This document shows positions 6,703 to 63,023 of a stretch of 64,000 bases of DNA, in pieces; the first letter of the stretch is position 1; each line of letters opens with the position of its first letter. Below the pieces are notes generated by a model. That model worked only from the letters and a program-made list of their open reading frames with translations. It was not told where the DNA came from and did not search any database. The stretch lies in the NCBI GenBank assembly GCA_024704765.1, contig JAKMXF010000055.1:256353-320352 (forward strand), given 5' to 3'. The translations under genes and the position numbers were made by a program. Source of the stretch: Oopsacas minuta (lineage: Eukaryota > Animalia > Porifera).

Positions 6703-7046
6703 ATCCATCTATGGATATTAATATTCAGATTATGAAGAGCGAATGTGTTGTGCATGTTATGAGACACTTAATGAAAACTCTAATGAAGATTCTTGTATGT
6801 AATAGAGAGGATGAATCTGTGAATACAAAATAATTGATCGTAAAAGCTGTGGAAAGATTGCCAGTGAATTTTACAAAACACTGAAAAGGAATCCAGGAAA
6901 TGCTATAAACGCTGCAAATAAGATACGATTAAATTTGCACTCAGTAGATTATGTATACCTTCTGGGTACATATTTCGTGTTATAGAGTGCCCAAAAGAAG
7001 GAAAACATTTCAAATATAGCTAAAATAGAATACGAATTGGATAATA

Positions 7047-7206
7047 CAGTGGATTTCGGGTATAATAATATGCTGGGTATTAAGCACCTCTGGAATATAT
7101 CGGTTCTCATATATTCCTGATTATTAAATGGCGGTTATAAGAACATGTATTGTTACTCCCAAAAGAGTTTCTTATAACCAATAGCTACAATAATCGAAAT
7201 TCACTG
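7047..7206. mobile_element. Tc1/mariner-pogo type MITE (CAGTGGA termini)
   Basis: Termini TA|CAGTGGATTTCG ... CGAAATTCACTG; related copy at 33345..33486. Confidence 0.6.
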
Positions 7207-7540
7207 TTCATATCACATATGGGAATCAGTTTGGCAAAAGCATAGGTAATTTACGAAGAAAATATAATAAAGTCAACAAGGGAGCTCGAATTTAAAGGCT
7301 CCTGAGTCTTTGTGGGCAAAGATGACGTCATGCCAACCCACCCTATAAGTTTGGATGACTCATCAATCATACGTAATATAATAGCAGTAAATTAGTAAGC
7401 TCGTTGTAAAATATGAACAATTATCTCCATTGCAACTTGGAATAAATATTTTGACATAAGAATAGGGAAAATAAAATACTGGATAAATCTAATTTAGTAG
7501 AGTATAATTAATGATAAGACATAAAATAAGAAATAGAGAC

Positions 7541-8050
7541 TCAGAGAGGTGAGAAGACCTGTATCATGTTATGTTCCTTCTCATCTACTGTTACAATAGA
7601 ACATAAGTCATCTACTGCTATTCCTGCTAGCCCAGTGAATTCTCCTAGAGCTGATCCTTCTTTACCGAATTTAGTAATCAGTTTACCTTCATTTGAGAAT
7701 ATCTTGATTTCAGAAGTTCTTGTATCAGCAACGAGTATGTTGTGTTGTTGATCAAGACAGAAATACCAAACTCCATCTAACAAATCTTTGTGTACAACAC
7801 ATATAATTATTGTACCTTGTTTAGAGAATGCTTGTATAGGATAACCTGTGTTAGTAAGAGCTATATAGAATACATCTCTAGCTAGTGATATATCTACTAA
7901 GTCAGTATCTTCTCCTTTGAATTGAGTGTTAAGAGTTATTCTCCTTATTTTTATCAATTCAGGTGTTAGGACTGTTAGCTGTATATTCTCCCATTGACCC
8001 ACAAAAATATAAGTATTATCTGTACAGATTCCTGATGGAGAATAGTCAAG
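7541..8050 (-). pseudogene. NHL-repeat (TRIM71-like beta-propeller) gene, C-terminal fragment
   Basis: The frame reads LDYSPSGICTDNTYIFVGQWEN ... ILVADTRTSEIKIFSNEGKLITKFGKEG..GEFTGLAGIAVD, typical NHL repeats. It is cut abruptly at about 8050. Confidence 0.85.
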
Positions 8051-9161
8051 ATATCAGTCAAAAGGCCAATGCTGTATTCTGTTACGCTTGTCGTCACTAC
8101 GTTATTGCTGGCCATGACGCTTACCGCACCAGAGGAATGCAAAACTTTGCTCACGGAAAAAAAAAGATAGAGGATCACAATGCCAGCGAGCAACACAAGT
8201 CTGCCATGGTAAAATGGCAAATGGCAGAGAAGGTGAAGTCGTCGGCCATCCAGTCAGTTGCCAGCAGCATTACAGCGGCACACAAGCAGGCAATCGATGA
8301 CAACCGCCACTACATCATCTGCATCATCCGCTGCATCCTCCTCTGTGCACTGCAGGGAATTGCTCTCAGGGGCCATCGTGAGCAAGTCGACGACGACAAT
8401 CCCACACTCAATCGGGGAAACTTCTTGGCCATAGTTTCGTTGACTGGTGTGTATGACGACGTGGTGCGCAAACGTCTCGACTCTGGACCACAAAACGCGA
8501 AATACGTCCATCATGACATACAGAATGATATTCTGTCTTCTGCCAGTTCTTTGGTTCGTCAGCTCATAGTTGCCCAAGTTGTCGAGGCAGGAGTGTATGC
8601 TGTCATGGCTGACGAAACACGTGACACGTGACACGTCCAAGGCGGAGCAAATGTCAATCGTCCTTCGGTATGTGAGCGATGGCGAGATCCATGAGGCCTT
8701 TCTTTGCTTCAAGGAGTGTCACAGACTGGACGCAGGAGGACTCTGTGAAACCATCCTCGACACTCTGCAAACGAGTGGCATCGATCCACAGCGGTGCTGT
8801 TCGCAATGTTACGACGGGGCGGCAGTCATGAGTGGTCACCTCAGCGGTGTACAACAACGCTTCAAAGAGGTAGTGCCTCATGCAACCTATGTACATTGTT
8901 ACGCCCACCGCTTCAACCTTGTTGTGGTGGATCTAGTGAAGACTCACGGTCGAGTTTGTGACCTTTTCGTTACTCTAAAACAGGGGTTTTCAACCTTTTT
9001 CTGACCACGACCCACTTTCCAACTTTTTAAAGCGTTCGCGCCCCACCCGATGAAGGCATAACCAAAACGTAAATTTCAAAATGTATGTACTTAACTCGTA
9101 TAAATTATTCTAATGTAAATTTACTACATCTACAATACTAATAATTATCACACATGATTAG

Positions 9162-10957
9162 TTAATGTGATTTTTGATGTTGTTTTTCATCAACTAGCTT
9201 TTGAATTCTAGGCTGTGTTATTGCTAAGCAGCAGCGTAGATCTGGTTCGACATCAAGTCTATTTCTAGCCTTAGTTTTGATTACTAGCATGCTAGAAAAC
9301 GCCGCTTCACACAAATAAGTTGATGGGAATGGCATGAGTAACTTCAGGGCAATCTGTGAAACTATTGGATAGCTTCCAAGCACAGAACTCCAAAAAGATG
9401 GCAAATCAACTCTTGAAAATAATGTTTGTGCTCCTGAATCGTTTACAAGTTTGATGAAATCCTCCTGTGCTGCATCGTGATTATCAGGAATGCAGTCATC
9501 TATTTTGGCCAGAAAAGGATTTCGAACAAGATTAAATTTGGATTTTGTTGTTTCTGGAAAGTATCTAGAGAATTCATCTTTAAGTGATTGCAAATGCGTT
9601 GCAATGTCATTTTGCAAAGCTTCGCTGAAACTAATTTCGCAATCTTCAACATAGCTACAGAGGTGAGAAAACATTGTAATCCTACCACTATTTATCTTGT
9701 TTCTCCAGAGGTCAAGCATTGCTTGAAAGGCAGAAAGCTTGTCTACAAAATCCATAATATTACTATCTTTACCTTGCAATGAGAGGTTCAGAGTATTGAG
9801 TCTTTCAAAAATATCGCAAAGATAACAAAGTCTAGTAATCCATTCGTGATTTTCGAATAAATCATGCCAATGCGTCCGCTTTTGGAGTTTTAAAAATTCT
9901 GTTGTTTCTTCCTTGAGGTCTAGAACACGTTTCAAAACATTGCCCTTTGAAAGCCATCTAACTTCAGTGTGATATAACAGATTCATATGCGCAGCATCCA
10001 TATCTAAACAAAGATTTCTGAAGAGACGAGTGTTGAGTGCGCTACTTTTAACGAAATTGACTGTTTTAATTACCTCCTGCAAGATAACATTTAGCGAGGC
10101 TGGCAAAGTCTTCGCTGCAAGGGCTTCTCGGTGAATCATACAGTGATTTGTTATCACATCTGGGACAAACTGTCTAACGCGTGTCTGGAACCCAGAATGG
10201 CTTCCCAACATAGAAGGAGCGCCATCTGTGCAAACAGCCCCAACTTTTTCCAATCGAGACCTTCTTTTACAAAAAAGGTGTCTACTTTGTTGAAAACATC
10301 AATTCCACGTGTTTGAGAATCAAGTGGCTGACAAAACAGGAACTCTTCTTTGAAGTTAGAATCGTGGATATAACGTACATATATCATCAGCTGAGCACAA
10401 GAAGAAACATCAGTTGACTCATCTAATTGCAAAACAAAGATGGGTGACTGTTTGATTTGCTCCACAACTTGGTTCTTAATATCCTCTGACATTTCCTGAA
10501 TTCTGCGCTGAACAGTGTTATCCGAAATTGACAGCGAACTTAGTTTTTTTACTGCATCTGCTCTAATCATTATGCGCACAATGTCTTTCGTGCAGGGCAA
10601 AACTAGCTCTTCACCAATAGTATGGGGTTTCTTAGATTTAGAAATACGTAGTGACACAACATATGATGCTTCAACTGCGGCTCTTATAGTGATAGCTGTC
10701 TGTCCTGTCGTATCAAGTCTAGATTTCTTGACAGATTGAGATTGTCTTTGGAAGAAAGAAACATCTCGGTCATTATATGTTGGATGTTCTTTCTCAAAAT
10801 GTCTTTTAAGCTGAAACGGCTTCATAGACTCTGTAGATAATACTTTCAGACATATCACGTATTGTGGTTTTTCAATACCTTCAATTACTATACTTGTAAA
10901 TCCAAATTTCAGATAATCATCTGAGTAAGCACGCTTCGGAGCACGTTTAGTTGCCAT
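9162..10957 (-). pseudogene. Buster/ZBED5/SCAND3-like transposase with a single frameshift near 10250
   Basis: ORFs 10154..10957 and 9162..10253 join into one transposase (QLDESTD, CTDGAPSM, HCMIHRE, EVRWLSKG, YLCEAAFS) if one A is added at TGGAAAAAGTTGG. Confidence 0.9.
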
Positions 10958-11086
10958 TTAAGTAAAAATACGATTAGAAGGACTTGTTAAAGTTGAAAGG
11001 CCTAGAAATGTCTTTATATAATTCTTTGTTGTACATACAAGCCTGGACTTCATAAGTCATTTAATAAAATATTACACTTCAATATT

Positions 11087-11204
11087 GGAATACATGCAAT
11101 TCGTGACATTACAATTCGTACCATTACAATTCGTGGCCTACAATTCGCGCCATTACAATTCGTGACATTACAATTCGTGACATGTCACGAATTGTATGTA
11201 TTCC
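11087..11204. repeat. 15-bp tandem array (ACAATTCGTGACATT, 6 units) bracketed by an inverted repeat
   Basis: Direct reading: GGAATACATGCAATTCGTGAC ... GTCACGAATTGTATGTATTCC. Confidence 0.85.
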
Positions 11205-12734
11205 TTCAAGATTCTATTTCTTCTATGTTATTTCATAATCAATACAATGATGTGATATAATGACAATAGGGTTTCTAATTACGCAATGCGACACTAACCA
11301 CAAATTAATAGTAATAGAATCACTGAAATTCAGTAAAAATTCCCACTTTCCACGACCCACTGAAAAAGCTCTCGCGACCCACTGGTTGAAAACCCCTGCT
11401 CTAAAACAACTTCACAACTTCTTGTCTACCAGCGTCGTTCATTCCCGTTATGTTGCAATTCAAAATGAACTTCACCCCGACATCAGACGCGTGAGATTCC
11501 CAGTATCTCTGAGACTAGGTGGGTCTGTCAGCACAGAGCCTTGTTTACGCTGTCTATAACACTGGACGCTGTGAGTGACGTCATCGACGAGTTTGCGGAA
11601 GAGAGTGGGGACCGTGGGACTACCGCCCGCAACCTACAACAAAAGCTCACTTCATGTTTCGTAGTCCACTTATTGACAATGCGTTGGTTGCTGCACATGT
11701 GTGCGGTGGCTACGGAGAAGCTTCAGGGCAAGACAGAGACAATGGTGGATGCCCTGGAAACTGTGAAGACTCTGAGCGGCATCGTCTCAAACCGCCCCGA
11801 ACATCCTTACCCTGATGAGATATGGGACTGCATCTGGAGCGAGGCTGTGGAGTTGACCACCCTGTGTGAGTTTCCTATTCTTCCAGCTCATCGTATACGC
11901 AGCGTCCGTAGAGGCAAAGGTGAGCGTGGTGGTAACTTCGAGGGCCCTGATGACTATAGACGTCGATTGTTCCTGCCACTGTGTAACGCACTCGCGAAGG
12001 AGCTCGATCGACGCTTCATGAAAAATGAGAACTGCGTCGTGTACAACGGAACTGTAGCACTCTCTCCCTGAAACAGTACTTTCTTGGATGTCGCCGACAT
12101 CAAGGCGTTCTGTCGACACTATAGTATATTTTGTGGAGATACACTGGCAGCGATAGAATCTGAGATTGCTTTGTTGAAGGATATGTTCACGAGAGAAGAA
12201 GAACTTCCGAAGACTTTGCTGGAATTCTACGTGTTCATGTCTCCACACAAGATTCTTTTTCCACGTATCTTCACAGCTATTCAAGTAGCTGCGACAGTTC
12301 CAGTTTCGAGCTCCTCGGCAGAAAGGTCATTCAGTGCACTGAATCGAATTAAATCATACCTTCGTTCGACAATGTCAGAAGAGCGGGGATGCGACTTGGG
12401 GTACTGCACGTGAATCGTAACATACTTTCCCTCATCGACGAAGAAGACATTCTGAATCGGTTCGCAGAGAAGAACCGCCGGATCCGCTTAGTTTAACTGT
12501 TTATTTAGTATATGTGACTTTAGTATTATATTGTTCCTGATTCTTTGACAGAATTTCACTTAATCTCATATAACAGAAAACTAAAATCACAAATTTCGTA
12601 AATATGGACCTATAAATCCTGCGCCCCCTCTAACGCCGCCACTGCTGAATTGATTAATTAAGGATTCTATAGTTGTGTTATTTCGTAATTGCTCGATAAA
12701 GAATCTAAAGTTGTGGTATTTCATAATTGCTCAA

Positions 12735-13380
12735 TTAAGTAGCTTCTTGGTTTTGCTTAGGCCCTAAGCAAAAGCAAGAATCTGTCCTAAGTGCCATCAA
12801 ACGCTTCAAGATTTGTCCTCTGGAAAGCCAGCGAACTTCTGTGTGATAGAGAAGGACTTCATATTCTGATCCCATTTCTTGACAAAGCTTCTTGAAAATA
12901 CGATGATTTAGGGCCCAGCCTCTGATGAAGTTGATGACTTTCACCACGGTAGACAAAACCTCTGAGAAATATTGGAAGAGTTTTCGATGCCAGTGCATGT
13001 CGATGTAAGAAACATTGAGTCACAGTTACATTAGGAGCTTCTTTCTTCACCAAAGCAGCAAAACCAGATCTATTGCCAAGCATCGTAGGTGCTCCATCTG
13101 TACACAGACTACCCAAATTTTTCTTCCAATCAAAGTTTCGCATAGCAAAGAAGCTTTTGACGTTTTCAAAAATATCGGTGGCCTTTGTAGTTTGCATAAG
13201 TGGTTCACAAAATAGAAACTCTTCTTTGATGCTTCGGCTTGCGCATAGCGGACGAAAACAAGTAGCTGGCTATACTGAGTGATGTCTGTAGTTTCATCAA
13301 GTTGCATACTGAAAGGGAATGGTGTGTCTGCTAGTTCCTTAATGATTTGTTTCAAAATATCAAAAGAAATATCAAATATT
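12735..13380 (-). pseudogene. Second Buster/Charlie-like transposase fragment, decayed
   Basis: QLDETTD, CTDGAPTM, LHRHALA and YHTEVRWLSRG are spread over three frames. Confidence 0.85.
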
Positions 13381-13401
13381 CGGGAATGTATTAGTATATA
13401 A

Positions 13402-13720
13402 CTAGCGCGCTCCTCTTGCTCTCGCTACGCTGGTTGCGAACACTTCGTGTCCGCAATCATACCTTCGGCTCTCAAGTAAGGGAAACTTATCTAGGATTTT
13501 TGAAGTTTGAGATTTGTTTCCCTTCACACACAAACAGAGTCGGCGTACACGTTTACGTTGAAACCACGTTCCTAAGATATTCCTGAAATTGATTTACTTA
13601 TTAGTCACCAACGCCAAGAAATATTCAAAATATGTTATTGACATTATCATCTTTGGATTCAGTGTACCCGATTACCCTAGGATAACCGTTGAAACCACGT
13701 TTCTAGAATAATATATAAAT
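13402..13720 (-). mobile_element. Non-autonomous Helitron-like element
   Basis: The minus strand ends in a GC-rich hairpin-like tract followed by CTAG|T; the 3' end resembles 63024..63060. The 5' end is approximate. Confidence 0.5.
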
Positions 13721-14058
13721 GTTTGAGTCATGGATGCACGTCCCTCTAAGTTCAAACTTTCTTGAATTTCTTAACTCCACAGAGGCACCAGGCTAACCGA
13801 TTAATTGCTACTATTGCTTTACAGCCATATTATCGCAAATTTCAGAAAGACTGAAATAGCCCTCTAGTTGATTTATGCTGGCTCCATCTTTTAATCATTT
13901 CGTATGTTCCCACTAAAAACCCTGATAGTTCGATGTGTCCCAATTGAAAAAACCCTGAGTTCCACAATGCGTATTCGTGAATGATAATGAAAGTAAGACA
14001 CAATACAAGTACAGATTGATCGATCTAATTGTATTTTATCTGAAATAATATATAATTA

Positions 14059-14151
14059 CCCCCTGTGTCTCCGTCAATGTCATTCTAGGCATATTGATCC
14101 CTAATAACAGAACTGGTAGTGCCTCCGATGCATTGACGGAGGCACAGGGGG
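14059..14151. mobile_element. 93-bp MITE with TA target duplication
   Basis: TIRs CCCCCTGTG(T/C)CTCCGTCAATG, flanked by TA on both sides. Confidence 0.8.
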
Positions 14152-14659
14152 TAATTTTATTCATTTTTGAGTATTTTAAATTAAAAATCTATCAAACATT
14201 TTCACACCTACATTGAAAATTCAACTCTCTAGTTATTAAAGTTTTAGCAGGACACATCAGAAGAAGGAATATAAACAAAAATAACGGCAACCATTTCAGA
14301 GCTGATCTACTATCTAATTGCCGGCGCAGTAAATATGTTGGTCCTGAATGAGTACTGGGTTTGCCTCGTACACCAGACTATTAATTTACGTCGCTTGTGC
14401 CACTGGTTTTGCCATGAATCGACTTATTCCTGTACACCAGTGTGATTGATAAGCCTTATACGCAAATGTGATGTACGCAAATGAAATTTATTCAAGTGTT
14501 CTAGACCTTGATTTTATTACTGATTTTCCTCAAATGAAAATTATATAAAGGAGTTGACTAATACATACGTCTCTGAATGTAAAAGGTACATTCTAGTCCT
14601 GAAAATTTCATTTATTATAATTTTACACCCAGAAGTGTCCAGGACTCAGAATTGTAATT

Positions 14660-16160
14660 CCTTAAGTGTATAAGACTTTTTGGAGATTTTTGTGTCCAAA
14701 GAGGGCCGGAATTTGGCAATTTTAGAGCGAATTTGGTTGAATTTGGTATTCAAAAAGCTCATCTACTGGTTAGGACACAGTGTTCCAATTATGTCGTCTA
14801 CAGTTATGTAAGGCATTGTCTACAAAAATAGTGGTAGCGTCCTGCCTCTAGGCCCCATTTTGTTGAGATGAGAGAGGCTACTCTTCAGCGTAGCATTTTT
14901 TAAATTGAGAGGGCGAAGCCCTCTCAATTTATTAGAAATTCCTTCCCATATATTTGAGACAATTCATTTGTATTTGATTTAATACCAGATACCATAGTTC
15001 ATTAAATAAATCCAGAAATTACAAATGCAATCAAACCTTTGCTTAAAATACCAAATAAAAACTCGTTAATTTGGCATTTTTTAATTGTTTTTATCTAAAA
15101 AGGTTGACTAGCTGTCATATTACACGATGCGTAAACGCTCTACCAAAATTGAAGTGTTTTAAATAAAAATATTTTCTAAATACCCTTCGTTTCGCCGGTT
15201 ATTTATAAATATTTTCCTTTTGAGATCATCTGGTTTGACACTTTTGACCTTTCAAAATGTGTCACCTTCTGACATTTTTACCTTCACAAGGAAAAGATCA
15301 TTTTGTGAATTTTTGATGAACATTCGTGGGCTTTGACGAAAATATACCATAAACCCTACTAAATTCCGAAAACCCCTATTTCCTGTCCAATTAAGCACTA
15401 TGGTAAAGCAAAAGTTTGCCTTGCTTTGCTTTTGACTTTATACGGCCTGAGACTTTTTGAGATTTTGTGTCCGAAAAATGGCTGGAATTTGGCAATTTTA
15501 TGGGAAATTTTCTTTTAATCTTGGGTTCAAAAAGGTCATTTATTGGTCATGAACAGTTTCCCAATTATGTCCTCTACAGTTGAGTTTGCCGGGTCTCAGA
15601 ATTTTTATATTCTGAAATTTCTCAGGTTTTAGAATAGTAAAGATTTTCCTGACCATTGTAATAACATTTAATTCTAGGAATTACAGCAATATGTGCATTA
15701 TGTAAAATTCATGCCGTGAATAGTCTATAGTTTCGTAGTCTGTGGTATACTTGTGTTCACATGCTTTGGAGGAAATGTGCGATTTTGTTCGTAAATCATC
15801 CACATTTCTCACACTTCTCACACTTTTGTTCCTATTTCCTTCAAATTCTCTCAAAATGACCTTTTCCACTTGTTAAAATCTAGTTACTCCTAAAAATTTA
15901 AATTTGCATTCAGTAGTCACCTTTTTATAGATGTAATGTGACCTTTTTAACAAAAGGTCAGTTTTTTCATTACCAACCTGGCGTACCACCGGGTTTTTAC
16001 TTTCCCAAAATGTGTCGATGAGTCTTTTACTTACAAAACCTGCATAATTTTTCTTTGGATAGGTTTTATATTTATATAGTTGTCAAAGTTTTATTATTTA
16101 GAGGGGAGAAATTCTCCTTTCTATTGAGAGTGCAATGCTATCTCAAATTCAATAATGTAC
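14660..16160 (+). repeat. Two diverged direct repeat units, each followed by a hairpin (possible Helentron-like non-autonomous elements)
   Basis: 14660..14805 resembles 15440..15590. Hairpin TTGAGAGGGCGAAGCCCTCTCAA near 14905-14928 and a related TTGAGAGTGCAATGCTATCTCAA near 16124-16146. Confidence 0.45.
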
Positions 16161-16984
16161 CTCTAGGGTTTAGCTTATCCTTTATGGAAATATAACCTGG
16201 GACCTATTTACACATCCACTAGTGTGTGTCTTTTATGCAACCGAACACTGTCGAAGAGTTACGATTGTAACAAACATCCATAACGACCTTTATCACCTGG
16301 AAAAACACGATTTTCAAATGAAAATTGTCCAAATTTGGCACTTTCTTTGAACTTATATATATCCTAAATTTCCCTAACTCTTCTCGGCATTAATCGTTTA
16401 TGTGTTTGTGCTGTATATATCTACATTATTAATACACAAGTAATCATTGCTTTGCTTTCGGGAGGGGAGGGGGAAAAAATATCCGAGCCTGCGCCCAAAG
16501 GGCCCCCGAAAATTTGATATTCCAGGGAATACTTTGGGGGATTTTATGGCTGTGTTAAGTAGGCAAGGTGAAAGTACATTCTTCCGCTGAGCCGAGTAAT
16601 ATCTTGGTTATTTATCATTTGATGCTACTAAATTTATTTCATCAAGGTTAGTCCAAATAGATTCAGAAGTTTCCAAAAGTTTATTGGCAACACGTTGTGC
16701 AATTTGCTATAGGTGCCATGGTTACACTAAATATTTCCTAACACTTCGAGTTGTGTTAGGGTTCGCGCATTTTAACTCAAGATTTGTATGGGTATATGTT
16801 GTGAAATGCGCAATTGCCATTTGGGCTACTAAATGGTTAAATATCCGATTTTGAGCTTTAGATTTAGGTAGTTTGAGCATGGTTTCTAAGTCAAAATAAT
16901 ACATTTTGAATAGTCTAGATCCATTGTTTTTGAGATATGATTGAGGTAAGTTGTGCAAGGACTGTATGGAGGGAGGAGTTGCAG

Positions 16985-17150
16985 AAGTCAGAATTTTCCT
17001 AGTTGTCAAGAGTCAGAATTGTTTTTTCGACTGTTGTCACTAGTCAGAATTGTTTTTTGGTCTGTTGTCAAAGTCAGAATAGTTTTTTGGACTGTTCTCA
17101 CAACTCAGAATAGCTTTTGGACTGTTGTCACAAGTCAGAATAGTTTTTCT
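16985..17150. repeat. About 31-bp tandem subterminal repeats of the adjacent MULE
   Basis: Units like AGTCAGAATTGTTTTTTGGACTGTTGTCACA, 5-6 copies; related units occur in the inverted arms at 45290..45830. Confidence 0.75.
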
Positions 17151-17304
17151 GAAATTTTGTTTACGCTTTGTTATTCTATAAATAATTACTGTTTAATGAA
17201 AATATTAGTAAAAGTAAAATATAACACAAAAAGAAATGAGAGCTTGTAAGATGGATGAGGAAGATGAAAGAAAGTGAATTGATTACCATTTATGAAATAA
17301 ATAT

Positions 17305-18690
17305 TTAGAATCGAATTTCGATATTTGATCGACAGATTGGACAAGGTTGTCCCAACTCTATGATTTGTTGGCTACAACTTGAACAACAGCTTGCATGGTG
17401 ACATGGCATAGAAATCCAAGGTGTTGCTCGTAGAGACAGACAAACGACACAACTATTTGCTTGATTAAGAACTTGATTAGGACTTTTATCATCAGACATT
17501 GCTGAATTGCTTGAATGGTAATTGTCCTCTAGATATGTTGCCAATTGTATGACTGATCGCCTGAACATATTTCATTGGAGTGAGGTCCCCTTCTCTTAAC
17601 TTTTGTTTATGCGTTCTCCTACAATAATCGTTATTAATTACTTTCCTTTTTCCTTTGTCTAATAATTTCTTTTCCAAGACCTATGCGACCTATTTCATTG
17701 TCTGTATCTTGAATAATCTCGTTTAGTGTATCCAGAAACGTCCATATTCTTGGATGAGCAGTTTTTATCATTATTTTCAGTTTGGAATGATAATTTTCGG
17801 CAGCATTATTTGTTGCAATATCTAGTTCAAAATCTAAAGTTCTTCTTAGGAAATTTGGTTGAGCCAACGCCTTTTAAAATATTTGGCTAGTTTGTCAAGT
17901 TTAATCATTATAATATTATCCAATGTAGGCAGCTCGAGGGAGGTAAAAGAGGGATTAATGAGAGCAGCAGGCAGAAAAGGTAAGGCCATTAGATTTCTGA
18001 TTAATTTTTTGACTTGTAGTTTGTCCTAAACTCTTGAATAAGCCTTAGCTTTTGTGTTTTGCCCCAATTCGCTGGGTATAATGGAACCAACAGCCAAAAA
18101 TCCTAATATGCTGATAAATTTGTCTAAACGCATTCCTTGCTGCAGGTTCCCAATCGGACAAGGATGCGTTGGATCTAAATAAAGGGATATTTACTTTTGA
18201 GACTCTCTAAAAAAGCTTGATATAATTCTTGCTTCTTTGAAGTCAACAGGCAATGAATAGCTAGTAAAGTGTTTCTTCCCACAGACACTAATATTGTCCA
18301 AAGTTGGTAGAATTGATTAGGGACTGTTTGGAAAGTCCCATCAAACTGTATGTTGATAACTTCAGCCATGAAAGTTTTCATCTTGGTCGGAAAAGAAAAC
18401 TACTCCTGTATGGCCATCACATGTGTCATTGAATTTGTTATTGATACCCAAATGAGTTGATAATAACATCTCGGAGAATTCAGAAGCCGATTGAGGTATT
18501 TTTGGTTGTAAAGTCCTCTTTGCACGATACATTGCAGCTTCACATTCTGCAAAAGAAATATCATCAGCAGATGGATCTGTTCTAGTTGCATAGTCGAATA
18601 CTTTCCTCAGATTCGTTTGAGTATGTTTGGCAAGGGTTTTACATTTTGTCTTGAAATCAAATTCTCATAAAAATTTGAGCTTAGCACAAC
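17305..18690 (-). pseudogene. MULE transposase with C-terminal RING finger, decayed
   Basis: FDGTFQTVPNQFYQL and ATNNAAENYHSKL..HPRIWTFL (MULE core), followed by CVVC..MPCHHASCCSSCS..CPICR (C3HC4/IAP-type RING). Several frameshifts. Confidence 0.85.
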
Positions 18691-19499
18691 TCCAATTGTT
18701 ACGAAATTTGTAGCGTAACCATATGTCACCTAAAGGAAACTTATAACGTGTTGCCAATATACTTTTCAAATTTTATTATTTTTTGGACCACCATATCAGA
18801 CTCCAAGGGACTAATTATAAGTATATAAACACTATCAGGGTTCCATACAAGGGGTTGGAAGCACTGGAATCTCCCCCTTCCAGAAAAAACATCTTATATG
18901 AAACATTGATTATAAATTCACCTGAATTGAACTGACCGCAACTGGGTGAAGGCTTCTTCTATAATTCTACTATTTGGAGTATTCATTGGCTCTAGGTTTT
19001 AATATAGACTACAGTCAACGAACTCGTATATATATATACATTCTTGCGATGTACGGAATGGAAGGTCCTAGTTCGCCTATTCCCATTTTGCCTACTAATC
19101 GGAAATCAATGCCATTTACTCAATCAAATAACACGTTTTTTAATATTTTCAGCTAGTCGTATGGTTTGCTAATCAATGAAATGCATTAATTTCTAGAAAG
19201 TACTAGATAACTGGGGTGTGCTGGGTCATACTCTCCTGGGCGCTTCGGTGCTCCACACGACATAAGACCAATCAGTTTGTTGGATTTCTAGAAAGAAGGA
19301 TGCAACTGGAGTGTGTTGATACAAATCTATGAAGAATAATTATGTTTACAATGAATTCTAGTATTTCGATAAAATTTCCAGCGATAAATTGTCCTGCGAC
19401 GAATTTTCTGCTATTCGTTATTTTTATTGAATACCCTGAAAACTATCCACTTCCTGAGAATATTTATTGAGAAACCTTAAACACTTGCTAATAACTAAT

Positions 19500-20204
19500 A
19501 ATTATTAACTGATGAACGTGTAGGCGAACTGGGTACAAAGCGTACAGAACATTGCTGAATTTTGGCATTTGTGGCTAAAATGAACACCGACCTATAACGG
19601 AATTATGACGTATTTGTTACCTTATTGGAAATCCGAAAAATAACTCATTTTGCCTCTGCTCAGCCAAAATACATGATGGAGGGCTGAAAATTTTTAGGGA
19701 ATATGTCGAACACTGATTCTTAACAGATGACCGTGTTTTCCACAAAAGTGCATGCTCATGGTGTGAATGTTACATCATCTTACTTATTAAATACTGATCA
19801 AATTGTATACTTTCTTATATATAAGGATACTATAAGCTTTATGGTGCTAAATGATTCAAGAATACATAGGGATATTAGGACCAAATGTAAGTTGTACCAC
19901 CGATTGCAATTTATATAATTTTCAATTAGTAATTTAGAGCAAAAAGTGCCGAGATTTGGAGAATCAATTGATTTGTTGCCTTGAAGCTGCCATGCTTGGG
20001 CTACAAAGTACCAAAAGCATTCGAACAACATCAGCTGAACGTTTGTTTGCCAGTAATTGTAATAAACACAGGCTTTGAAATATATAATAATTTTAGTATA
20101 GATGTATTCGATTTACTTGACAAGTGTCTAGGTATTAAGTTTAGTCACTGCGGAACGGTAATTCTGTAAAGTCGTGAAGAGACAAAGCAAGCGAAGCGCT
20201 CTAG
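19500..20204 (+). mobile_element. Possible non-autonomous Helitron-like element
   Basis: 3' end AGCGAAGCGCT hairpin followed by CTAG|T at 20204; 5' boundary uncertain. Confidence 0.4.
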
Positions 20205-20249
20205 TATGCAGTAGATATTGCATATAGTGATATATTGGATATAGTGAGG

Positions 20250-21800
20250 CGTGACCTACGTTATATAAGGCCTATTCACCAACTAAATTTTTCTGGACCA
20301 TGGATAATGGGAAGTCCATTGTTTAAATTAATGTATATGTACATAGATAGAAAGATATATTGATAATTGTATATTTTCATATCTTATTCAAGTTAGAAGT
20401 ACGTACAGTTGTAATAGGAATACAATCAACACTAGGTCAAATTACACATGAATCAGAATGACATGAAACTAGTAATAGCAATTAGAAAAGAACATGGAAT
20501 TCTATCAAGTGCTTTTAATCTTCTTCAATTTTCGAGTATTCTCAACCTCAAGTTTATGTAAAGCATTCAAGTTCTTGACTTTGTTTGAGAGAAAACAATT
20601 GGCGCCAGTAGTGAGTAACTTATTTAATATATCCCAACCAATCGTATTACAATTGGGGCACATATTCCGCCAGTATTCACCTTCTTCATTTTCAAGTACT
20701 CTTAATGTTAGGTTAACTATAATTTGTCTAGATGGTCCTTCAATAAGTTCTTGAAAAAGTTGAGGTTGTTGTTCGATCGAGGTGAAAATTTTCCACAAAC
20801 AAACTAGGACGTTGATTACAATACCTGATGGCCATTTCAATGCACCACGATCCATAACTTGTAACAGCTTGTAGATTGATTCTGGTGATGCTTCTATTTC
20901 CATCTCTTTGTTTTCTGTAAGGAAAGATAAGCAATTTTGACAAAGGAAAGAATTCTTGAGGTAACTATAAACTGCATATCCAGCAATAAACACAAGTGCC
21001 TGTTGAGTTGAAGTCGGAACTTTAATTACCGAATATTCTTGTACAGATGACAGAAAATGTTCCGTGTCAAGAGAATTAGCAGGTTCTGTTGAAGTTGAAA
21101 AGGAATCAATAAATTCTTTAAGAGATAAATCATGCACTGCACCTTGACTTGAAAAAACTTTTAGGGTACTAGATAACTTTAAGCGTCACTCGCTTTCGAG
21201 GATCTGACAGAAGGTAATATGATATTGAGCACCAGCCATCATTCTGTAAATTCCAAAATGATGCTCCAGAGGGTCATTTTGCAAAAAAGAAATGAGTAAA
21301 TATGAAAAGTTACAGTTCTGTGTAAGATGGTTTACTATTGAAGTTAACGCTAAACAAGAGTGGCGAATGTGTTGAAAGTCTGAGTAGTAAGTTTCCCAGT
21401 CTTGCGAGGTAACTCTTGCCATTTTTCAAGCCAATCAACAACTCATGATAGATAACTGAATCTGGAATCGTTTTGGACAAATGGGCGATACAGTTCATCA
21501 TTTACTCGAATCGCTTTGGATGGAGTATTAACGTTAAACATCTTCCAGATGTCACAAATCACACGAATGAATTCGCCTATGTAATGATAAGAATGGTGGC
21601 CAGGAGATGTAAGATACTGAACCTTGAGTGCAGAATGTGTAGAATCATCAAAAACTTTCTGTGCCAAATTTACATTCTGACGTTCCAAGTTGGAAGGCCA
21701 GCATGCTTTGGCTGTTAACCGAGGAGCCAACTTAGCTATTGAGTGTTGATCAGCTTTATATAAAGTTCGGATGTCTTCAAATGAAATGACTGTGAAGTTA
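20250..21800 (-). pseudogene. P-element (THAP9-like) transposase, central and C-terminal remnant with one terminus
   Basis: LAPRLTAKACWPSNLERQNV, QNDPLEHHFGIYR, FIAGYAVYSY..MDRGALKWPS. Terminus-like CGTGACCTACGTTATATAAGGCC at 20250 resembles CATGGCCTAC termini at 33543 and 42812. Confidence 0.85.
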
Positions 21801-22239
21801 GCTTAGTATTCGACTAGGGTCATTTCAATTCAATATTTAACCCACTTCCAGTTATCAGATTTAAATAAATTTAGTATATTTCGATAGAGGAGATTCAGAG
21901 GTTTTATGCTATATAATTTATTTTCCAAAATAATTATTTTTTAATCTGTTTTTTTGTCAAAGAAAGCAGGGTTGATAATCCCTCAAAAATCACTATCTAA
22001 ATTTCGAATTACAAATCTAAAATTTTGTCAACATACTGTCGAGACATGGAGGTTTATGCCATATAAATTTATTTTTACAATTCGCTAGATTTTTGGAGTT
22101 ACAACCATTCAAACTTGAAGTTGGTAAATCGAATTCTAATATAGATTGGATATTGTTATTTGTGTAAGCCTACTATAGTGATTGCGTACATACCTGTAGT
22201 ACATTCCTTGATTAATGACATCAAACCTTCGCTACTTTA

Positions 22240-22391
22240 CAGGGCGTAGATAAAGTTACAGAACTGGGGGGGGGACTTGGATAAGGTTATTATTACATGT
22301 GGTCGTAGGCTGGAGTGTCTAAATAATACTCTTGGCTGAGATCTGGGGGGGGCTGAAGCCCCCCAGCCTCCCCCCAGTGTCTACGCCCTTG
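22240..22391. mobile_element. hAT-like MITE
   Basis: Termini CAGGGCGTAGA ... TCTACGCCCTTG; no clean TSD. Confidence 0.55.
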
Positions 22392-22780
22392 CTTTAGCAT
22401 TAATTCGAAGATATTTAGTTTCAATTTGATCGATTTTCTTACATTACACACAGTAGACTCTCTAATGCGAACGTCTCAGTCTAAAATTTCATAAAAGCGT
22501 AGCTTTGAAAATTTATTGATGATCCCTCGAATCACAGAGGTTAGTGTTTGTATCATTCTATATACAGTATTGTAATTACCTTCCCGCCCAGATATCTAGC
22601 AGCGATATAAGGTCAACACATGATTATTTATTAATTTGAAGTAATACATTATAACAATGGTGAACAAAACATGAACATTTGCAAAAATTGAAGCAAAATG
22701 ATTGATAATTATATAATAAATCTAACAATTAAACAGTGAGAGGAAACACAAAAACATACTACATAAATACACAGTGAAAA

Positions 22781-23894
22781 TTAATTGATAAATATTTGCC
22801 TTGGGGAATCCTTTAAATCCACCTGCAGGACAGGTTCATAATGCTGTCCATTATGGTTTAAGTATATAGAGCCTGTATCATTGGCAGGGGGAAGTTCCAA
22901 GGTATCAATTAATTTAGAGCCTCTACCTGAGAATACCATCCATTTGTTACCCATATCAGAACTATATATCCAAATATCTGTCCGCATCAATAAAGCTGCA
23001 GCAAACATCTCCACATCACCTCCCCACGTATAATTTCTCTTCATGTTAGATTTCACCACATAATCAGCAACATTACGGTAATTACTTGCACATTTAGGAA
23101 ATTTATTCATAATAAACTTATTGCATACTTCTTTGAGTTTCCCTAACATATTTTCTACCACCTTAAATCGTACTAAACTAACAGATTCAATACTTCCTGT
23201 CATCCAATAAGAGAAAGAGGCGAATAAACAGTTTCCATCTCCAGGGATTTCAAACAATTTGGAAGGAACATGTTCTTTTAAATTTGAATTAACTGATATG
23301 GTACCTTTAACGTAATTTGGACAATCTACAAGATGTAATTGTAAATCCTCACATATTCCATTCTGTCCTTGATATGAAAGTGGTTGGAATGCTGGTAAAG
23401 TATAATCTAAGGAAGCCATTTCTATTATATCTAAATCACTTATTATTTCAATCTCATTAACATGCAGAGTTTTGCCATCAACTTTAACATTTCCTGAATT
23501 GTCCACAGGTAAAGTAGCTACTTTTCTGTTGGTTGCACATTTTCTTGAATTATCTACTTCAAAACCGTAAGAAGAATTGAAATCATTGAATGTTTTGTTT
23601 ACTTTATCAACAGTAGGTTTAGTATAACTAAATTTGCTTTTCTTACTTCTCGACCATTCCTCTTGACATTCCTCCTCGTTTTCAACACGTAACCTCTTCT
23701 TATGTTTAAATACTTTAGATGCCAGCGGTGTAAAAGCGAATGTAAATGCAGCAATCCTATCATCAATATTAGTATACATTGTTATGATGAAATTTGCAGC
23801 CCGTATCCCGGTTTCTGAATTAAATATGCTATGCTTAACAATCTTGAACCAATTCTCAACATATGCGTTACTATCCATTGGACTCCCTGACGAA
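22781..23894 (-). pseudogene. 3' part of a NOF-FB-like MULE transposase with C-terminal OTU-like cysteine protease domain; 5' cut by a hAT terminus
   Basis: N.YVENWFKIVK resembles the MULE C-terminal catalytic Glu motif. OTU motifs GDGNCLF, WGGDVE and NHNGQHYEP. The frame is open for 365 aa. Confidence 0.7.
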
Positions 23895-24303
23895 CAGGGG
23901 CGGCGCCAGCTTTTTCATCAGGGGTCGCATAGGGGTCGCATAGGGGTGGCAGAGCATCTGGCAGGGGTCGCAGAATAAGGAAAGGAAACTCAAAAATGTC
24001 TCATTTTTTAGATTGTATCCATAACCAACATGGTATGTTTGGAATCTAAAACCGACTTTAATGTTGAAATTATGATTTTCTTCTGATTAATATTATTTAT
24101 TCGTTTTTGTTAGTACCTTTAGTATCCAAAATGAGTGACATTCCTCCCGCAGCTACTAAACGTCATAGAACTGAAGCTCCTGGCCCAGATGATCTGTCCT
24201 CTTGCGCAGATGAGAAGCCCACCCAGCCCAAATTGCATTCTTTTCCTTTGTTTGGCACCACTGGCCGCCGCTTCAATCCTGACTGGTATGGAATGTTTCA
24301 GTG
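23895..24303 (+). mobile_element. 5' end of a ZMYM1-like hAT transposon (TIR plus N-terminal TTF-zinc-finger half)
   Basis: TIR CAGGGGCGGCGCCAG at 23895; MSDIPP..PTQPKLHSFPLFGTTGRRFNPDWYGMFQ, cut at about 24303. Confidence 0.8.
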
Positions 24304-24537
24304 TTTGTAAGATTCTTTCTCAAAGGTTGATTTGCTGAATTTACATATTCACCGTGGGCATTGTACAAAGATGGAGTCAGATAGAATGAGAATATTCTCT
24401 GGATACTTCGTTTCTTCATCTTCTAGGGATTGAATCCACTCTCCATTTCCAGAGAATATCTGAACTCTGTTAAGCCCCCAATCAGCTACATATATTCTAT
24501 CATTGATAGAATCTATAGCTACACCAGATGGATTATA

Positions 24538-25851
24538 CCAGGTTGTCCAAAAAGTTCGCGGAATTTTATCCCTAGTTTGTGTTATATACACTCTATCAAT
24601 TAGCCTATTGTTTCGATTAATTCTAATAATCCCTTATCTCAATTATCCTAACTTTTGTAATCAAAAAGTTTGGTTTAGGTATTCTTTTAGCATCATTTAC
24701 GATTGTCGTATTTTTTTCTATAATGGAAAACTCAGAAGATGGGAAACGATATATCATTTGGTTTCTCTGGAAACAAAATATAAGTGGAAGCGAGATTCTC
24801 TACGAGATGGAAAAGGTTTATGGTAGTAAATGCCCTGGTAAATCGATGGTTTACAAATGGATTGACAGATTTAATGATGGGCATTCAACTGTTGATGATT
24901 ACCCAAGACCTGGTCGTCCGAAAACATGTTCCAACCAAGAAAATATCAAAATTATATCAAACTTTCTTGATAAAGATAGACGTGTGACTCTGCGTCAGTT
25001 AGAGGAAGAATTGGGGATGTCAAAATCAATACTTGATAAGATTCTAACTGAACAATTGGGAATGTCGAGAGTTCTTTCTCGTTGGGTTCCCAAATTGTTA
25101 TCTGAATCTCAAAGGATTGAAAGGGTTCGTGTTTGTCGCCAGCTCTTACGGATTTCTAAGAAGGAGCCAAGGTTCTTTGATCGTTTAGTCACAGGGGACG
25201 AGACTTGGTTACATTTTTATGAGCCTAAGACAAGTTTACAGACGAGTCAATGGAAGCGTAGGCATGAAGCAACTCCTATTAGACCCAGAGCCGTCGCATC
25301 AGCAGGTAAACGGATGGCAACAGTTTTTTGGGACACAAAGGGAATAATCATGATTGATTGGTTACCTAACAAAGTAACAATAAATACTGAATACTATGTT
25401 CAAGTTCTGAAGAAATTGCGCGAAGCTATCAAGTCTAAGAGGCGTGGCAAGTTGAGTTCTCATGTTTTGCTTCAGCATGATAATGCTCCAGTCCATACCA
25501 GCAGGCGAACTTTGGATGAAATTCAACATTTAGGGTTCGAATTACTCCCACATCCCCCATACAGCCCAGATCTAGCGCCCAGCGACTACTGGCTTTTTTC
25601 AGAAATGAAAAGACCACTTAGAGGTAAACGTTTCAGCGATTTTGAGCACCTTAGGTCCGCTGTTAATTCATGGATTCAAGGTACCCCTGAAAAATTCTTC
25701 ACCACAGGAATAAATAAACTCCCATCAAAATGGAAGAAATTTATCGAGGTTAAGGGTGAATTTATTGAAAACTATGAACAATAATTAGTTGAGTATGATC
25801 ATTGATAAATAAAATATATTTGCAATTCCGCGAACCTTTTGGACAACCTAG
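24538..25851 (+). mobile_element. mariner transposon, full length
   Basis: About 28-bp TIRs C(C/T)AGGTTGTCCAAAA(A/G)GTTCGCGGAATT; TA duplication on both sides. Confidence 0.97.
24723..25784 (+). CDS. mariner DD34D transposase, intact 353 aa
   Basis: HTH region, WVPK, GDETW, HDNA and YSPDLAPSDY, with 34 residues between the second and third Asp. Confidence 0.97.
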   Translation: MENSEDGKRYIIWFLWKQNISGSEILYEMEKVYGSKCPGKSMVYKWIDRFNDGHSTVDDYPRPGRPKTCSNQENIKIISNFLDKDRRVTLRQLEEELGMSKSILDKILTEQLGMSRVLSRWVPKLLSESQRIERVRVCRQLLRISKKEPRFFDRLVTGDETWLHFYEPKTSLQTSQWKRRHEATPIRPRAVASAGKRMATVFWDTKGIIMIDWLPNKVTINTEYYVQVLKKLREAIKSKRRGKLSSHVLLQHDNAPVHTSRRTLDEIQHLGFELLPHPPYSPDLAPSDYWLFSEMKRPLRGKRFSDFEHLRSAVNSWIQGTPEKFFTTGINKLPSKWKKFIEVKGEFIENYEQ

Positions 25852-27117
25852 TATACCTGATCATTTAGCTTGCCTTTATCTCCAAAACTCGACTTGAGTG
25901 TAATATGAATGTCTTCTCCAAACTTCACAATTCTCTGTCCAACATGTACACAGTGAATTGATACTCTCCCTAAACTCATTAACTTTCCATCTCAAGTTCA
26001 CGTAAGGAATATCAATATTCATTCCTCTTTTCACAGATTCTATAGATTCATTGATTTGGTCGAAACAGGGAATTTGGTTCAATTCTTTGAAGATCTTCCC
26101 CATCTCTGCTGCTATCAATCACCTCTCTCAGCATATTCATTCTGTCCTGTAGCTTGTTGCTGACAGGCATCAAGCTAACAGGTCCAGGGCTGGAATTTCA
26201 TGTATCAATGCAGTTGCCATTATCACTTATATTTCAGTTTAATGCTAGTACTATTATAATATAGAACTATATAAAGTGGCTTATACATATCCGTATAGAG
26301 TATATATCTATTACAAGTATACGTAACATATAATGTATGTCTAAATATATCTCATATAATATTAGACACACGATTCTTATGGAATAGATTTCAATTGTAA
26401 ACTCTCGTTATAGCGAAGTGCTCATGCTCGGGACACCTGCTTCATTTCGTGGTAAGTGGAGTAAAATCAATTACGTACTTCCAAGCTATAGGGCAGGGGT
26501 AGAATTCCCCACATATAGAGGTAAATGATGTGGGGCATAAAGTATGCCCCATGGCCACTCCCCGCTTATAGAGCTTCCCATATTTCACGTCATTTCAAGT
26601 CAGTGAGTTTCCGTTTTTGCGATGCATTATTTACAGTAAATTGTTTCGCAGATTTACTATTATTCTATTCTACACTTGAGTTGTATTAACCCCTCATAAT
26701 CAAATACATATATACGTATATTATACTCGTTATTTCATTCTGGATGCAATTGATTGAATCCACATGAAATCAACCACATTGTCATATTTGAAATAACTTT
26801 CTTCTGCATATATACTGAATCGATCAAACCCTCATGCGGAATCACTCAAAAATGCATGCGAGATCACCTAACCCGTATGCGGATTGACGAATTTAAATTA
26901 TCCATTGTGAATTTGAAAAACATTTTATTCATAAATATAATATCAATAATTATAGCTTTGTTAAGATATAGGGAAAGATTCTCAATTATTACGGCTCCTA
27001 AATATAATTTCAGCAAAAATCAAACCCTTGGAGGAGCGTCCGGCGCTCCTAGATAATTGCCAGGTACATTTGGTCCAGTCATACTAATTTGCAAAACTAA
27101 CCTAAAGCACATATTAT

Positions 27118-62170: not shown

Positions 62171-63023
62171 TACAGGGCCGGCTCAAGGGGGGGCTGCGAC
62201 CCTTACAAATGCACGATCCACCGAATAATTGACCCCAGGATACTGAACCTTAAAATGTATGGTCCGTATCATAGGCGCCAGAACTCAATTTGGTCAGAGT
62301 GGGTCAAAAAACACCCTACCTACCTTCTTTTGGCGCCCCTGGTCCCGATAGATAATGAATTTCTGACGGACCTGAAAGTGTTGTCAGGTGTCCCCTATTG
62401 TACATTGACAATGCTTTAATATTCAATAAGCGGAAATTCCTGCGATTTTCTCCAAATTGCGTTAATTTCATGTAACTGAATATTTTGCTTCAACATTAAT
62501 CGCAATGATTTCCTTCGCGTTATTTTTCATCTCATTAATTTGATTGAGCTTTTATTTCCTATAACAGGGTGTTCACCTGAAATTCTTTACCAATTTCTCC
62601 TTGATATATTTATCATATATTTAGGCAGTGACATTCTCTGATTTTCTACTCTATGTTTACGACAGGTTATTACACAAAGACCTCAATGAGAGAGTTATTA
62701 GATATGGTCTTCAAAGCGCAAAGTTGTCATCCTTTGTCACATCAATCCCTGGACAAAGCATTTCCGCAATGTAATCAACAAAACGATATTTTATGTGTGT
62801 CATCCAACAATGCATATAGGTACTGCAGCGGGCTGGGAATTTCATGGAACGGCTCAGACCGATAGCATAAACCTGGTCAATTCTTGTTCAGCCCACCCTA
62901 AAGTTTTGGCAAGTTTGGTGGAACATTAGCCCCAACACATGTCCAAAAAACCGGGACATTTGTATATTGGCTCATTAAATGGTTGGCTATCTATATAGTA
63001 TAAATTTAATTTTTTAATAATAA

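Follow-up and report, generated by a model that had tools for sequence, protein, structure and literature searches.

A circularly permuted, transposon-rich block in an NHL gene copy of Oopsacas minuta suggests capture of a circular or unit-length DNA molecule opened inside a hAT element

Background

Among the closest described cases of a chromosomal segment moving through circular intermediates is that of the cattle KIT locus (colour sidedness), where Durkin et al. in 2012 (Nature 482:81, cited in PMC3784456 and PMC12235870) are said to have described a serial translocation by this route, with the segment lying in circularly permuted order at its new site. The permuted order reportedly argues for a circle that was opened away from its closure point. 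To our knowledge, germline circle-mediated relocations resolved to the base are few, with KIT in cattle and some primate duplications as the known cases. In human segmental duplication pairs, the order A-B/C-D was found to become B-A/D-C, with gains or losses of 1–27 bp and microhomology of 0–2 bp at the junctions; unrelated interspersed repeats hold the majority of the breakpoints, and involvement of homologous recombination or transposons was not found (Chicote et al. 2020, PMC7450558). In tumours and yeast, chromosomal circles (eccDNA/ecDNA) re-enter the genome by end joining and disrupt genes (PMC9527254, PMC8414719).

Here we describe an insert of 16,249 bp (positions 8055–24303), rich in transposable elements (TEs), which splits one collinear NHL gene of the glass sponge Oopsacas minuta. 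Like the cattle KIT segment, it appears to be relocated chromosomal DNA in circularly permuted order. In cattle, however, the donor and both alleles are known, and the event duplicated hundreds of kb with a functional gene and a phenotype, whereas in Oopsacas a pseudogene holds a 16-kb block of TE remains that lacks a donor and whose permutation is apparent from a single transposon. With the human pairs it shares the reversed order and the small junction changes (here a 9-nt loss and an extra T, with breakpoints in TEs), but those pairs keep the ancestral copy, while the Oopsacas block has no second copy and a transposon acts as the ruler that reveals the permutation. The tumour and yeast events arose in somatic cells or under selection in culture or tumours, whereas the present block is a fixed part of a reference assembly of germline origin. 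Finally, the block contains ordinary hAT elements (Buster/Charlie-like, DUF4371-type), of which hAT-B shows canonical terminal inverted repeats (TIRs) and an 8-bp duplication; unlike these, the 16-kb block itself is not TIR-bounded and has no 8-bp duplication.

Results and discussion

The window is a stretch of 64,000 nucleotides of contig JAKMXF010000055.1, in which the features of Table 1 were delimited. The order of the block is NHL C-terminal part (−), hAT body to 3′ TIR (+), a mixture of TE remains of approximately 11 kb, hAT 5′ TIR with N-terminus (+) and NHL N-terminal part (−), which bears out an earlier note on this DNA in which the NHL and hAT halves were both arranged in this way.

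Table 1. Features of the block and its host gene (positions in the window).
Positions	Strand	Feature	Basis
6915–8054 (coding 7541–8054)	-	NHL-repeat gene, C-terminal part and 3′ flank; ends at left junction	Pfam NHL match; paralogue collinearity
8055–8980	+	hAT-A body, first stretch	Pfam zf-C17orf113 (profile 10–60 of 63), DUF4371; 70.5% identical to C316 relic
8981–11398	-	Nested hAT-B, ordinary transposition into hAT-A	TIRs and duplication read directly; Pfam DUF4371, Dimer_Tnp_hAT
11407–12644	+	hAT-A body, second stretch, to 3′ TIR ending ...GCCGCCACTG at 12644	Pfam Dimer_Tnp_hAT; TIR read directly; C316 and C343 relic matches
12645–12740	+	Repeat R fragment, internal start with CTGAATTG (12645–12652); right flank of hAT-A 3′ TIR	
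12741–22780	.	Middle segment, mixed old TE remains	Own-genome search; Pfam RING, weak MULE matches
12781–13391		hAT-B-like fragment in middle segment	
~17098–18650		MULE-like fragment with RING ORF in middle segment	
20236–22177		Unclassified repeat in middle segment	
22781–23894	-	OTU-MULE transposase, C-terminal half, cut by hAT-A 5′ TIR; last 8 bp CTGACGAA (23887–23894)	Pfam OTU
23895–24303	+	hAT-A 5′ TIR (CAGGGGCGGCGCCAG), leader, first 57 codons and TG; ends at right junction	Direct reading; 68% identical to C316 relic
24304–24535	-	NHL gene, part directly N-terminal of junction	Pfam NHL; 86–88% identical to paralogues
24536–25852	+	Mariner within same NHL gene, separate event	Pfam Transposase_1, DDE_3, HTH matches
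25853–26522	-	Remaining N-terminal part of NHL gene, with upstream region	82–91% identical to, and collinear with, paralogues

The host belongs to a multi-copy family of intronless NHL-propeller genes and is a dead copy, with an in-frame TGA at 24349–24351. Comparison with eight paralogues showed that 6915–8054 (85–93% identical to, and collinear with, L016, L018, L020 and L021) and 24304–26522 make up one collinear gene, the mariner aside; the ends of the latter are 95–99% identical to more than 30 loci, and NHL homology picks up again directly behind it. A single paralogue base (L018:1497, L020:2014) matches both 8054 and 24304, so that the target lost nothing and gained a second T. Apart from this the acceptor site is intact, and all eight paralogues read across it; the empty site is known from these paralogues and not from an orthologous allele. 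The joining of the two NHL halves, which the earlier note had only thought apparent, is thus an exact abutment, and the uninterrupted paralogue that it proposed to look for exists in eight copies. Derivation of the halves from different paralogues was considered and rejected, as both have the same nearest paralogues and similar branch lengths (0.054 and 0.07); the trees of the two halves were unresolved and gave no hint of a mixed origin.

At the left boundary, GATAT (8050–8054) is NHL sequence in seven of seven aligned paralogues, and the insert therefore begins at 8055. The insertion thus stands as first described, but its left junction moves from 8050/8051 to 8054/8055. Neither boundary carries a TIR, both falling within the transposase ORF, and the target duplication amounts to 1 bp, compared with 8 bp for hAT elements. 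The lack of a TIR and of an 8-bp duplication at either junction marks the event as end joining and not as transposition, in agreement with the initial view that the ends were not of transposase type.

The break in hAT-A could be placed to within 9 nt. It falls in the W-L-E-Y-S motif that belongs to the N-terminal zinc finger: the 5′ piece stops at 24303 with the TG of a Trp codon, and of the codon at the Tyr position only the final base remains, at 8055, as the start of the 3′ piece. Both pieces are collinear with the same relic (C316), as an alignment of the two to one family should show, and 9 nt separate them on it. Five more distant hATs have the same spacing as C316 between the Phe and the first Cys, and this equal spacing indicates that 9 nt are missing between the hAT-A halves. 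The earlier note was therefore right that the halves are adjacent and that the break lies inside the transposase, in the W-L-E-Y codons, but the join is not residue-perfect when compared with these six related hATs. A reading without loss, in which GATAT and TTTG would come from hAT-A, fits in length but demands Cys-Leu-Asp-Ile at a site that is Trp-(Leu/Ile)-(Glu/Lys)-Tyr in the five distant hATs and Trp-Val-Glu-Asn in C316, a degraded relic. Since these bases are native to NHL in seven paralogues and the residues are mismatched, this reading is unlikely. Conservative site-specific recombination of the Crypton or tyrosine-recombinase type was likewise rejected, because the reconstructed circle site would lose its reading frame through the missing 9 nt; the only core common to both junctions is one T.

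These results support a block that is circularly permuted about a single point within one hAT family, the permuted order being read only from the hAT and not from the 11-kb middle. Two random breaks in a 2.57-kb element would fall within 9 nt of each other in approximately 0.7% of cases, and this comes besides the base-exact NHL abutment; a chance origin of the matched breakpoints is excluded. A single inversion, a tandem duplication and an unequal exchange were worked through on paper, and each yields only one of the two junction types, which upholds the previous exclusion of a simple inversion.

The two TIR flanks of hAT-A come from different contexts, as had been noticed at the outset. The 5′ TIR cuts an OTU-MULE, two relatives of which (L036 and L038) are mutually homologous for more than 560 bp past this point, and the N-terminal half of which is absent from the window. 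A MULE-domain fragment at approximately 18.2 kb was considered as this missing half and rejected, belonging to a different family. The 3′ TIR is followed by the interior of repeat R: the alignment with ten other copies starts precisely at 12645, and the conserved sequence that these have further left is missing in the window. The slight mismatch of the hAT-A TIRs, which agree at approximately 12 of 15 positions, had been taken as a further sign of two copies, but is uninformative, as slightly differing TIRs are normal within a single hAT. Both flanks share their first 4 nt, CTGA (approximately 1/256 by chance), and a microhomology closure or deletion at this motif would account for the differing flanks equally well as two copies; 12645–12648 is conjectured to be the closure point of a circle.

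Within the block, hAT-A is frameshifted and interrupted. The hAT-B element nested in it is flanked by the 8-bp duplication CTCTAAAA (8973–8980 and 11399–11406), its ends are 94–99% identical to approximately 20 loci, and the C316 relic is unbroken across the hAT-B site. Pieces of the middle segment have only 65–95% identical relatives in the own genome, and its remainder has no relatives there.

The 61.46-Mb assembly contains neither a second copy of 13400–23894 or of the collinear middle, nor a solo hAT-A. The other hAT-A sequence found is a 91%-identical 136-bp 5′ end with an unrelated flank at a contig edge (C215:1-136), and the remaining relatives are relics at 68–81%. A search for a donor scar, in which the left part of repeat R would be joined to CTGACGAA (17-mer, at most two mismatches), gave only chance-like matches, and no OTU-MULE N-half fragment starting at the break was seen among the best 40 candidates. 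One 17-mer match lies within the window at 62354 and is unrelated. The earlier note had expected a donor locus with a solo hAT and the N-terminal half of the MULE on its flank, and neither scar was found in the assembly, the sensitivity of the second search being limited; its proposal of recombination between two direct hAT copies is not supported, the predicted solo hAT being absent from the whole assembly. The assembly search likewise gave no donor locus with a mapped closure junction.

The probable explanation for the block is that a break in one NHL-propeller gene copy was mended by end joining that captured a DNA molecule of 16.25 kb, made up of one hAT-A and approximately 11 kb of adjoining TE-rich DNA. 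This molecule would have been circular, or a single exact unit of a head-to-tail array, and would have been opened in the W-L-E-Y codons of the hAT-A zinc finger with the loss of 9 nt; its new ends would then have been ligated to the NHL break with zero target loss and one extra T, the hAT transposase playing no role in the insertion. Such a circular or unit-length intermediate is supported as the most economical reading, and we consider that it probably explains the permuted block best. The locus combines permuted order, exact host abutment, a 9-nt gap, TIR-free junctions without an 8-bp duplication and unrelated TIR flanks, and thereby displays what characterises circular intermediates of the cattle Cs29 and human cSDP type, namely permuted order, an intact acceptor and short-indel junctions without transposase signature. 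It speaks against a circle that neither a donor locus nor an empty allele was found in this assembly, and that the circle itself was not seen.

We infer the free circle and its formation from the block. Given a circle, the chances are about even that one hAT-A was excised with its flanks and end-joined, possibly at CTGA, in which case the closure would lie at 12644/12648; this route is supported by the absence of hAT-A elsewhere in the genome and by the 4 nt common to the flanks. Recombination between two direct hAT-A copies is possible but somewhat doubtful as the source of a circle, and closure of a single-copy circle by end joining fits at least as well.

The same final sequence, with every junction of the end-joining type, would be expected from a multi-break event without a free circle (shattering with random re-ligation, or template switching of the MMBIR type). 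The donor would then have been cut at three points and NHL at one, and the 3′ part of the hAT with its right flank and the left flank with the 5′ part of the hAT would have been joined in swapped order at the NHL break. A donor destroyed in this way would be missing from the genome, as is the case, and Chicote et al. likewise weigh a replicative interaction (PMC7450558). However, this requires one simultaneous junction more than the opening of a pre-formed circle, and the rest of the 64-kb window does not look shattered, the host gene being collinear on either side; we therefore regard a multi-break event as unlikely.

A linear fragment with its ends halfway through two directly repeated hAT-A copies, and with breakpoints equal by coincidence or at a fragile or specifically cut site, would be in line with TIR flanks from different contexts, as two copies would give, and with the CAGT that starts the 3′ piece and the CAGTG that ends the 5′ piece, which recall the CAG(T/G)G at which the TIRs begin. 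The cuts are nevertheless unlike hAT ends, as an 8-bp duplication is lacking and the right end differs from ...CTG, coincident breaks in two copies meet the low chance expectation given above, and neither donor copy leaves a remnant in the assembly, which makes a linear fragment improbable.

The assembly was made with SPAdes from short reads and PacBio reads combined, with a largest k of 99, and was scaffolded with SSPACE and gap-filled (PMC10280926), and an 11-kb middle mis-joined into what is truly a simple reciprocal NHL/hAT-A exchange, or chimeric junctions, could in principle arise in this way. On the other hand, the block contains no N runs and no internal repeats, and exact matches of its middle segment to the nearest relatives compared reach 83 nt at most, which is shorter than k=99. 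Of long high-copy repeats it has one, hAT-B, on either side of which lie the matching 8-bp duplications and contiguous hAT-A. Repeat collapse cannot yield two reciprocal, base-precise junctions, because NHL and hAT-A have no repeat in common. A 198-aa ORF spanning the left junction is present in NCBI nr, solely from the 976,792-bp contig of the same assembly. An assembly artefact seems hardly probable.

A rearrangement by hAT transposase (macrotransposon, reversed-ends or sister-chromatid transposition, as known from maize Ac/Ds) is very improbable, and is already contradicted by the junction anatomy: the hAT 3′ and 5′ ends do face each other over 11 kb like a reversed-ends substrate, but the NHL junctions lie inside the transposase ORF and not at the TIRs, an 8-bp duplication is lacking, each TIR is still joined to its flank where reversed-ends transposition would have split the two, and hAT-A is itself disrupted.

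Conclusions

As the reinsertion of circles is known from cattle, human duplications and tumours, the locus is to be seen as a clean new example and not as a new mechanism, and one case cannot show the general TE-seeded eccDNA route that the first reading had advocated. No biological consequence is visible, the host being a dead family copy and the cargo TE debris. What the locus offers is a broken transposon as internal ruler, which fixes the permutation to within 9 nt so that the donor locus is not needed, and a genome-wide count of such events, recognised by abutting TE halves in swapped order, could be attempted in any assembly. That germline re-integration of multi-kb circles is recurrent in the compact Oopsacas minuta genome, with TE-rich regions supplying the circles, is a speculation to which we give a low probability. 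If true, a survey of permuted TE halves could gauge how often eccDNA naturally re-inserts in an animal of an early branch.

A 16-kb block inserted into an NHL pseudogene

The NHL repeats of the host gene lie on the minus strand in two stretches separated by 16 kb of transposon-rich DNA. The earlier note had taken these stretches for halves of one gene, and a DNA search of the whole genome assembly (61,460,524 bases in 365 contigs) bore this out, as at least eight uninterrupted paralogues were found in which the two stretches directly adjoin. In the alignment spanning the site, seven paralogues read ...AGTCAAGATATTTGTAAG..., while the left side of the window reads ...AGTCAAGATAT followed by foreign DNA, and the right side reads foreign DNA followed by TTTGTAAG.... 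When four paralogue loci were compared with the window by BLAST, they were collinear with 6915-8054, 24304-24535 and, beyond a 1.3-kb mariner, 25853-26522, and a single paralogue base matched both 8054 and 24304. The host has therefore lost nothing and gained one T, leaving an intact acceptor site, and the insertion starts at 8055, 4 bp further right than proposed earlier. The nearest paralogues were the same for both NHL halves and the terminal branch lengths were similar (0.054 and 0.07), with no sign in either measure of different source genes.

This NHL copy is a pseudogene, carrying an in-frame TGA (24349-24351) and the mariner in addition to the block. The mariner family looks young, since the end of the element matches more than 30 loci at 95-99% identity, and it is possibly active. 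Three copies of the NHL family lie about 4 kb apart on one contig, C111.

Features of the block and its surroundings (window coordinates unless a contig of the assembly, G000, is named)
Feature	Position	Strand	Description
NHL repeats (Pfam)	7541-8054; 24304-24535	minus	Host gene, split by the block
Insertion	8055-24303		16,249 bp
Junction-spanning ORF	8035-8628		198 aa
hAT-A 3' piece	from 8055		Left edge of block; starts C AGT CAA...; translation SQKANAVFCYACRHY...
hAT-B	8981-11398	minus	DUF4371-type; perfect TIRs; 8-bp duplication CTCTAAAA
hAT-A body after hAT-B	from 11407		Terminates in 3' TIR at 12644
Repeat R	12645-12740; other copies at loci L054, L061-L069		Short family with ~38-bp subrepeats
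RING-finger ORF	17305-17568		87 aa
hAT-A 5' piece	23895-24303		Right edge of block; 5' TIR (CAGGGGCGGCGCCAG), leader and ORF from ATG at 24131
Mariner	24536-25852		Intact 353-aa transposase ORF 24723-25784; in the same NHL pseudogene
hAT-A-like 5' end	29405-29460		CAGTGGCGGCGCTAGG...; flank TTTTAAAG
NHL family copies	G000:C111:437339-446320; C345; C312; C99		At least 8 copies, 86-93% identical

The block edges are halves of one transposon family

The two edges of the block are occupied by pieces of a single type of hAT transposon, here hAT-A, in permuted order. The ORF of the 5' piece at the right edge terminates with ...RRFNPDWYGMFQ plus TG, and the left piece encodes a C17orf113-type zinc finger from profile position 10, then DUF4371 and a hAT dimerisation domain (Pfam). 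Both pieces are collinear with one degraded relative on contig C316 (68% and 70.5% identity), which has exactly 9 bases of its own between them, and five hATs of the genome that are more distantly related share the motif F-x3-W-x5-W-(L/I)-(E/K)-Y-S-x7-C with identical spacing. The pieces are therefore halves of one element family, separated at one cut point. The almost residue-perfect join claimed for them proved close but not exact, as compared with these relatives 9 nt are missing, namely the final G of a Trp codon, the two codons after it in full and two bases of the codon that follows.

The body of hAT-A is interrupted by an unrelated hAT, hAT-B, and the C316 relative is uninterrupted across this site. 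The hAT-B coding region consists of two overlapping ORFs and is hence frameshifted, and its end matches about 20 loci at 94-99% identity. This nested element shows, within the block itself, how a transposase-made insertion appears.

Junctions and possible mechanisms

Transposition of the block as a hAT was rejected, as it has no TIR at either edge and lacks an 8-bp duplication. A conservative recombinase is unlikely, as the junctions have only one T in common and the implied site on a circle is 9 nt short. The one extra target base and the 9-nt donor loss are instead typical of non-homologous end joining, and both fall within the range reported for human duplications derived from circles, with indels of 1-27 bp and 0-2 bp of microhomology (PMC7450558).

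Two further features were observed at the left junction. The hexamer AGTCAA is present on either side (8044-8061), one occurrence lying in NHL and the other, 12 nt away, in hAT-A; the pair may be a microhomology aiding synapsis or could be due to chance, at a few per cent. The 198-aa ORF starts antisense to NHL and continues into the hAT-A transposase. It is found in NCBI nr as a protein, solely from this assembly's own contig, and is an annotation artefact across the junction.

The reciprocal junctions are both in cis at a distance of 16 kb, and none of the four pieces has changed orientation. A single inversion, a tandem duplication and an unequal exchange were worked through, and each accounts for one junction type but not for the other. 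This leaves an inserted segment that starts just past a point in hAT-A and stops just short of the same point, which a circle opened at that point would yield automatically. Insertion of such a circle is the best explanation of the block, and one that we hold to be moderately probable. The same product would result from a multi-break reshuffle, which sequence alone does not distinguish from a circle.

Assembly artefacts, taken all together, are improbable. The published genome (365 scaffolds, ~61 Mb, 36% G+C) was assembled with SPAdes from Illumina and corrected PacBio reads, followed by SSPACE scaffolding and gap-filling (PMC10280926), and what risk is left lies mainly in a mis-join in the ~11 kb of mixed transposon remains between the hAT-A TIRs (the middle segment), through which a simple reciprocal exchange would look like an insertion. 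However, the window contains no N and the block no internal repeats, and the longest exact match of the middle segment to its nearest fetched relatives (83 nt) is shorter than the largest k-mer (99). Moreover, hAT-B, the sole long high-copy repeat, has matching duplications and contiguous hAT-A sequence on either side, and NHL and hAT-A have no repeat in common that could make false junctions. For a linear fragment taken from between two hAT-A copies, both copies would have had to break independently at positions equivalent to within 9 nt, with a probability of about 0.7%.

Possible origin of the proposed circle

The flanks of the two hAT-A TIRs, noted earlier to differ, belong to different repeats. 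At the 5' TIR an OTU-MULE transposase (Pfam OTU) is interrupted, whose relatives are mutually homologous for more than 560 bp past the interruption; the 8 bp ahead of the TIR (CTGACGAA) appear to be the MULE's own, and its N-terminal half was not found anywhere in the window. The 3' TIR adjoins CTGAATTG, an internal position of the repeat family R. In ten other R copies the alignment starts at precisely that base, and conserved sequence that is absent from the window lies to its left; every other copy extends leftward past the window's fragment by 70 bp or more. The flanks are therefore not a target-site duplication.

The earlier note had derived the circle from recombination between two direct hAT-A copies, a proposal that found no support: the solo hAT-A that it predicts at the donor locus is absent from the full assembly. 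There, the sole match to the 5' piece was an end of 136 bp, 91% identical, which has an unrelated flank and lies at the edge of contig C215, the hAT-A body matched only relics (68-81% identity), and the middle segment had no second copy, its pieces matching just other members of transposon families (65-95%). A possible alternative is that just one hAT-A copy lay in the MULE and was excised together with ~11 kb of its left-hand neighbourhood, the ends then being joined. Both flanks open with the same tetranucleotide, CTGA (expected by chance in about 1 of 256 cases), as they would if the circle had closed by microhomology between the right-hand duplication copy and R, or if a microhomology deletion between these two had taken place earlier. 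That no further hAT-A remains also agrees with the single-copy route. The donor scar would read R-left, CTGACGAA, then the MULE N-half; it was not found in a 17-mer search with two mismatches, a weak test given that R copies vary, nor in two similarly weak searches with a relative's MULE N-half, in which the best 40 candidates were scored. On balance we lean slightly towards the single-copy route.

Two other elements were observed. The RING-finger ORF (C3HC4; Pfam E=1e-10) lies inside an old MULE-like repeat of the middle segment. The hAT-A-like 5' end 5 kb to the right of the NHL gene is closer to the hAT-A TIRs than these are to each other, and BLAST gave no similarity past the end.

Relation to known circle-derived insertions

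Permuted order is an established footprint of circle re-integration for extrachromosomal circular DNA in tumours, and was reportedly taken as such by Durkin et al. in 2012 for the cattle KIT translocations. In human, it is taken to mark a circular intermediate in 16 pairs of segmental duplications (PMC7450558). The block resembles these cases in its permutation, its intact acceptor and its junctions, but differs from them in that no donor was found. The class of mechanism is already known, and the locus is functionally inert.
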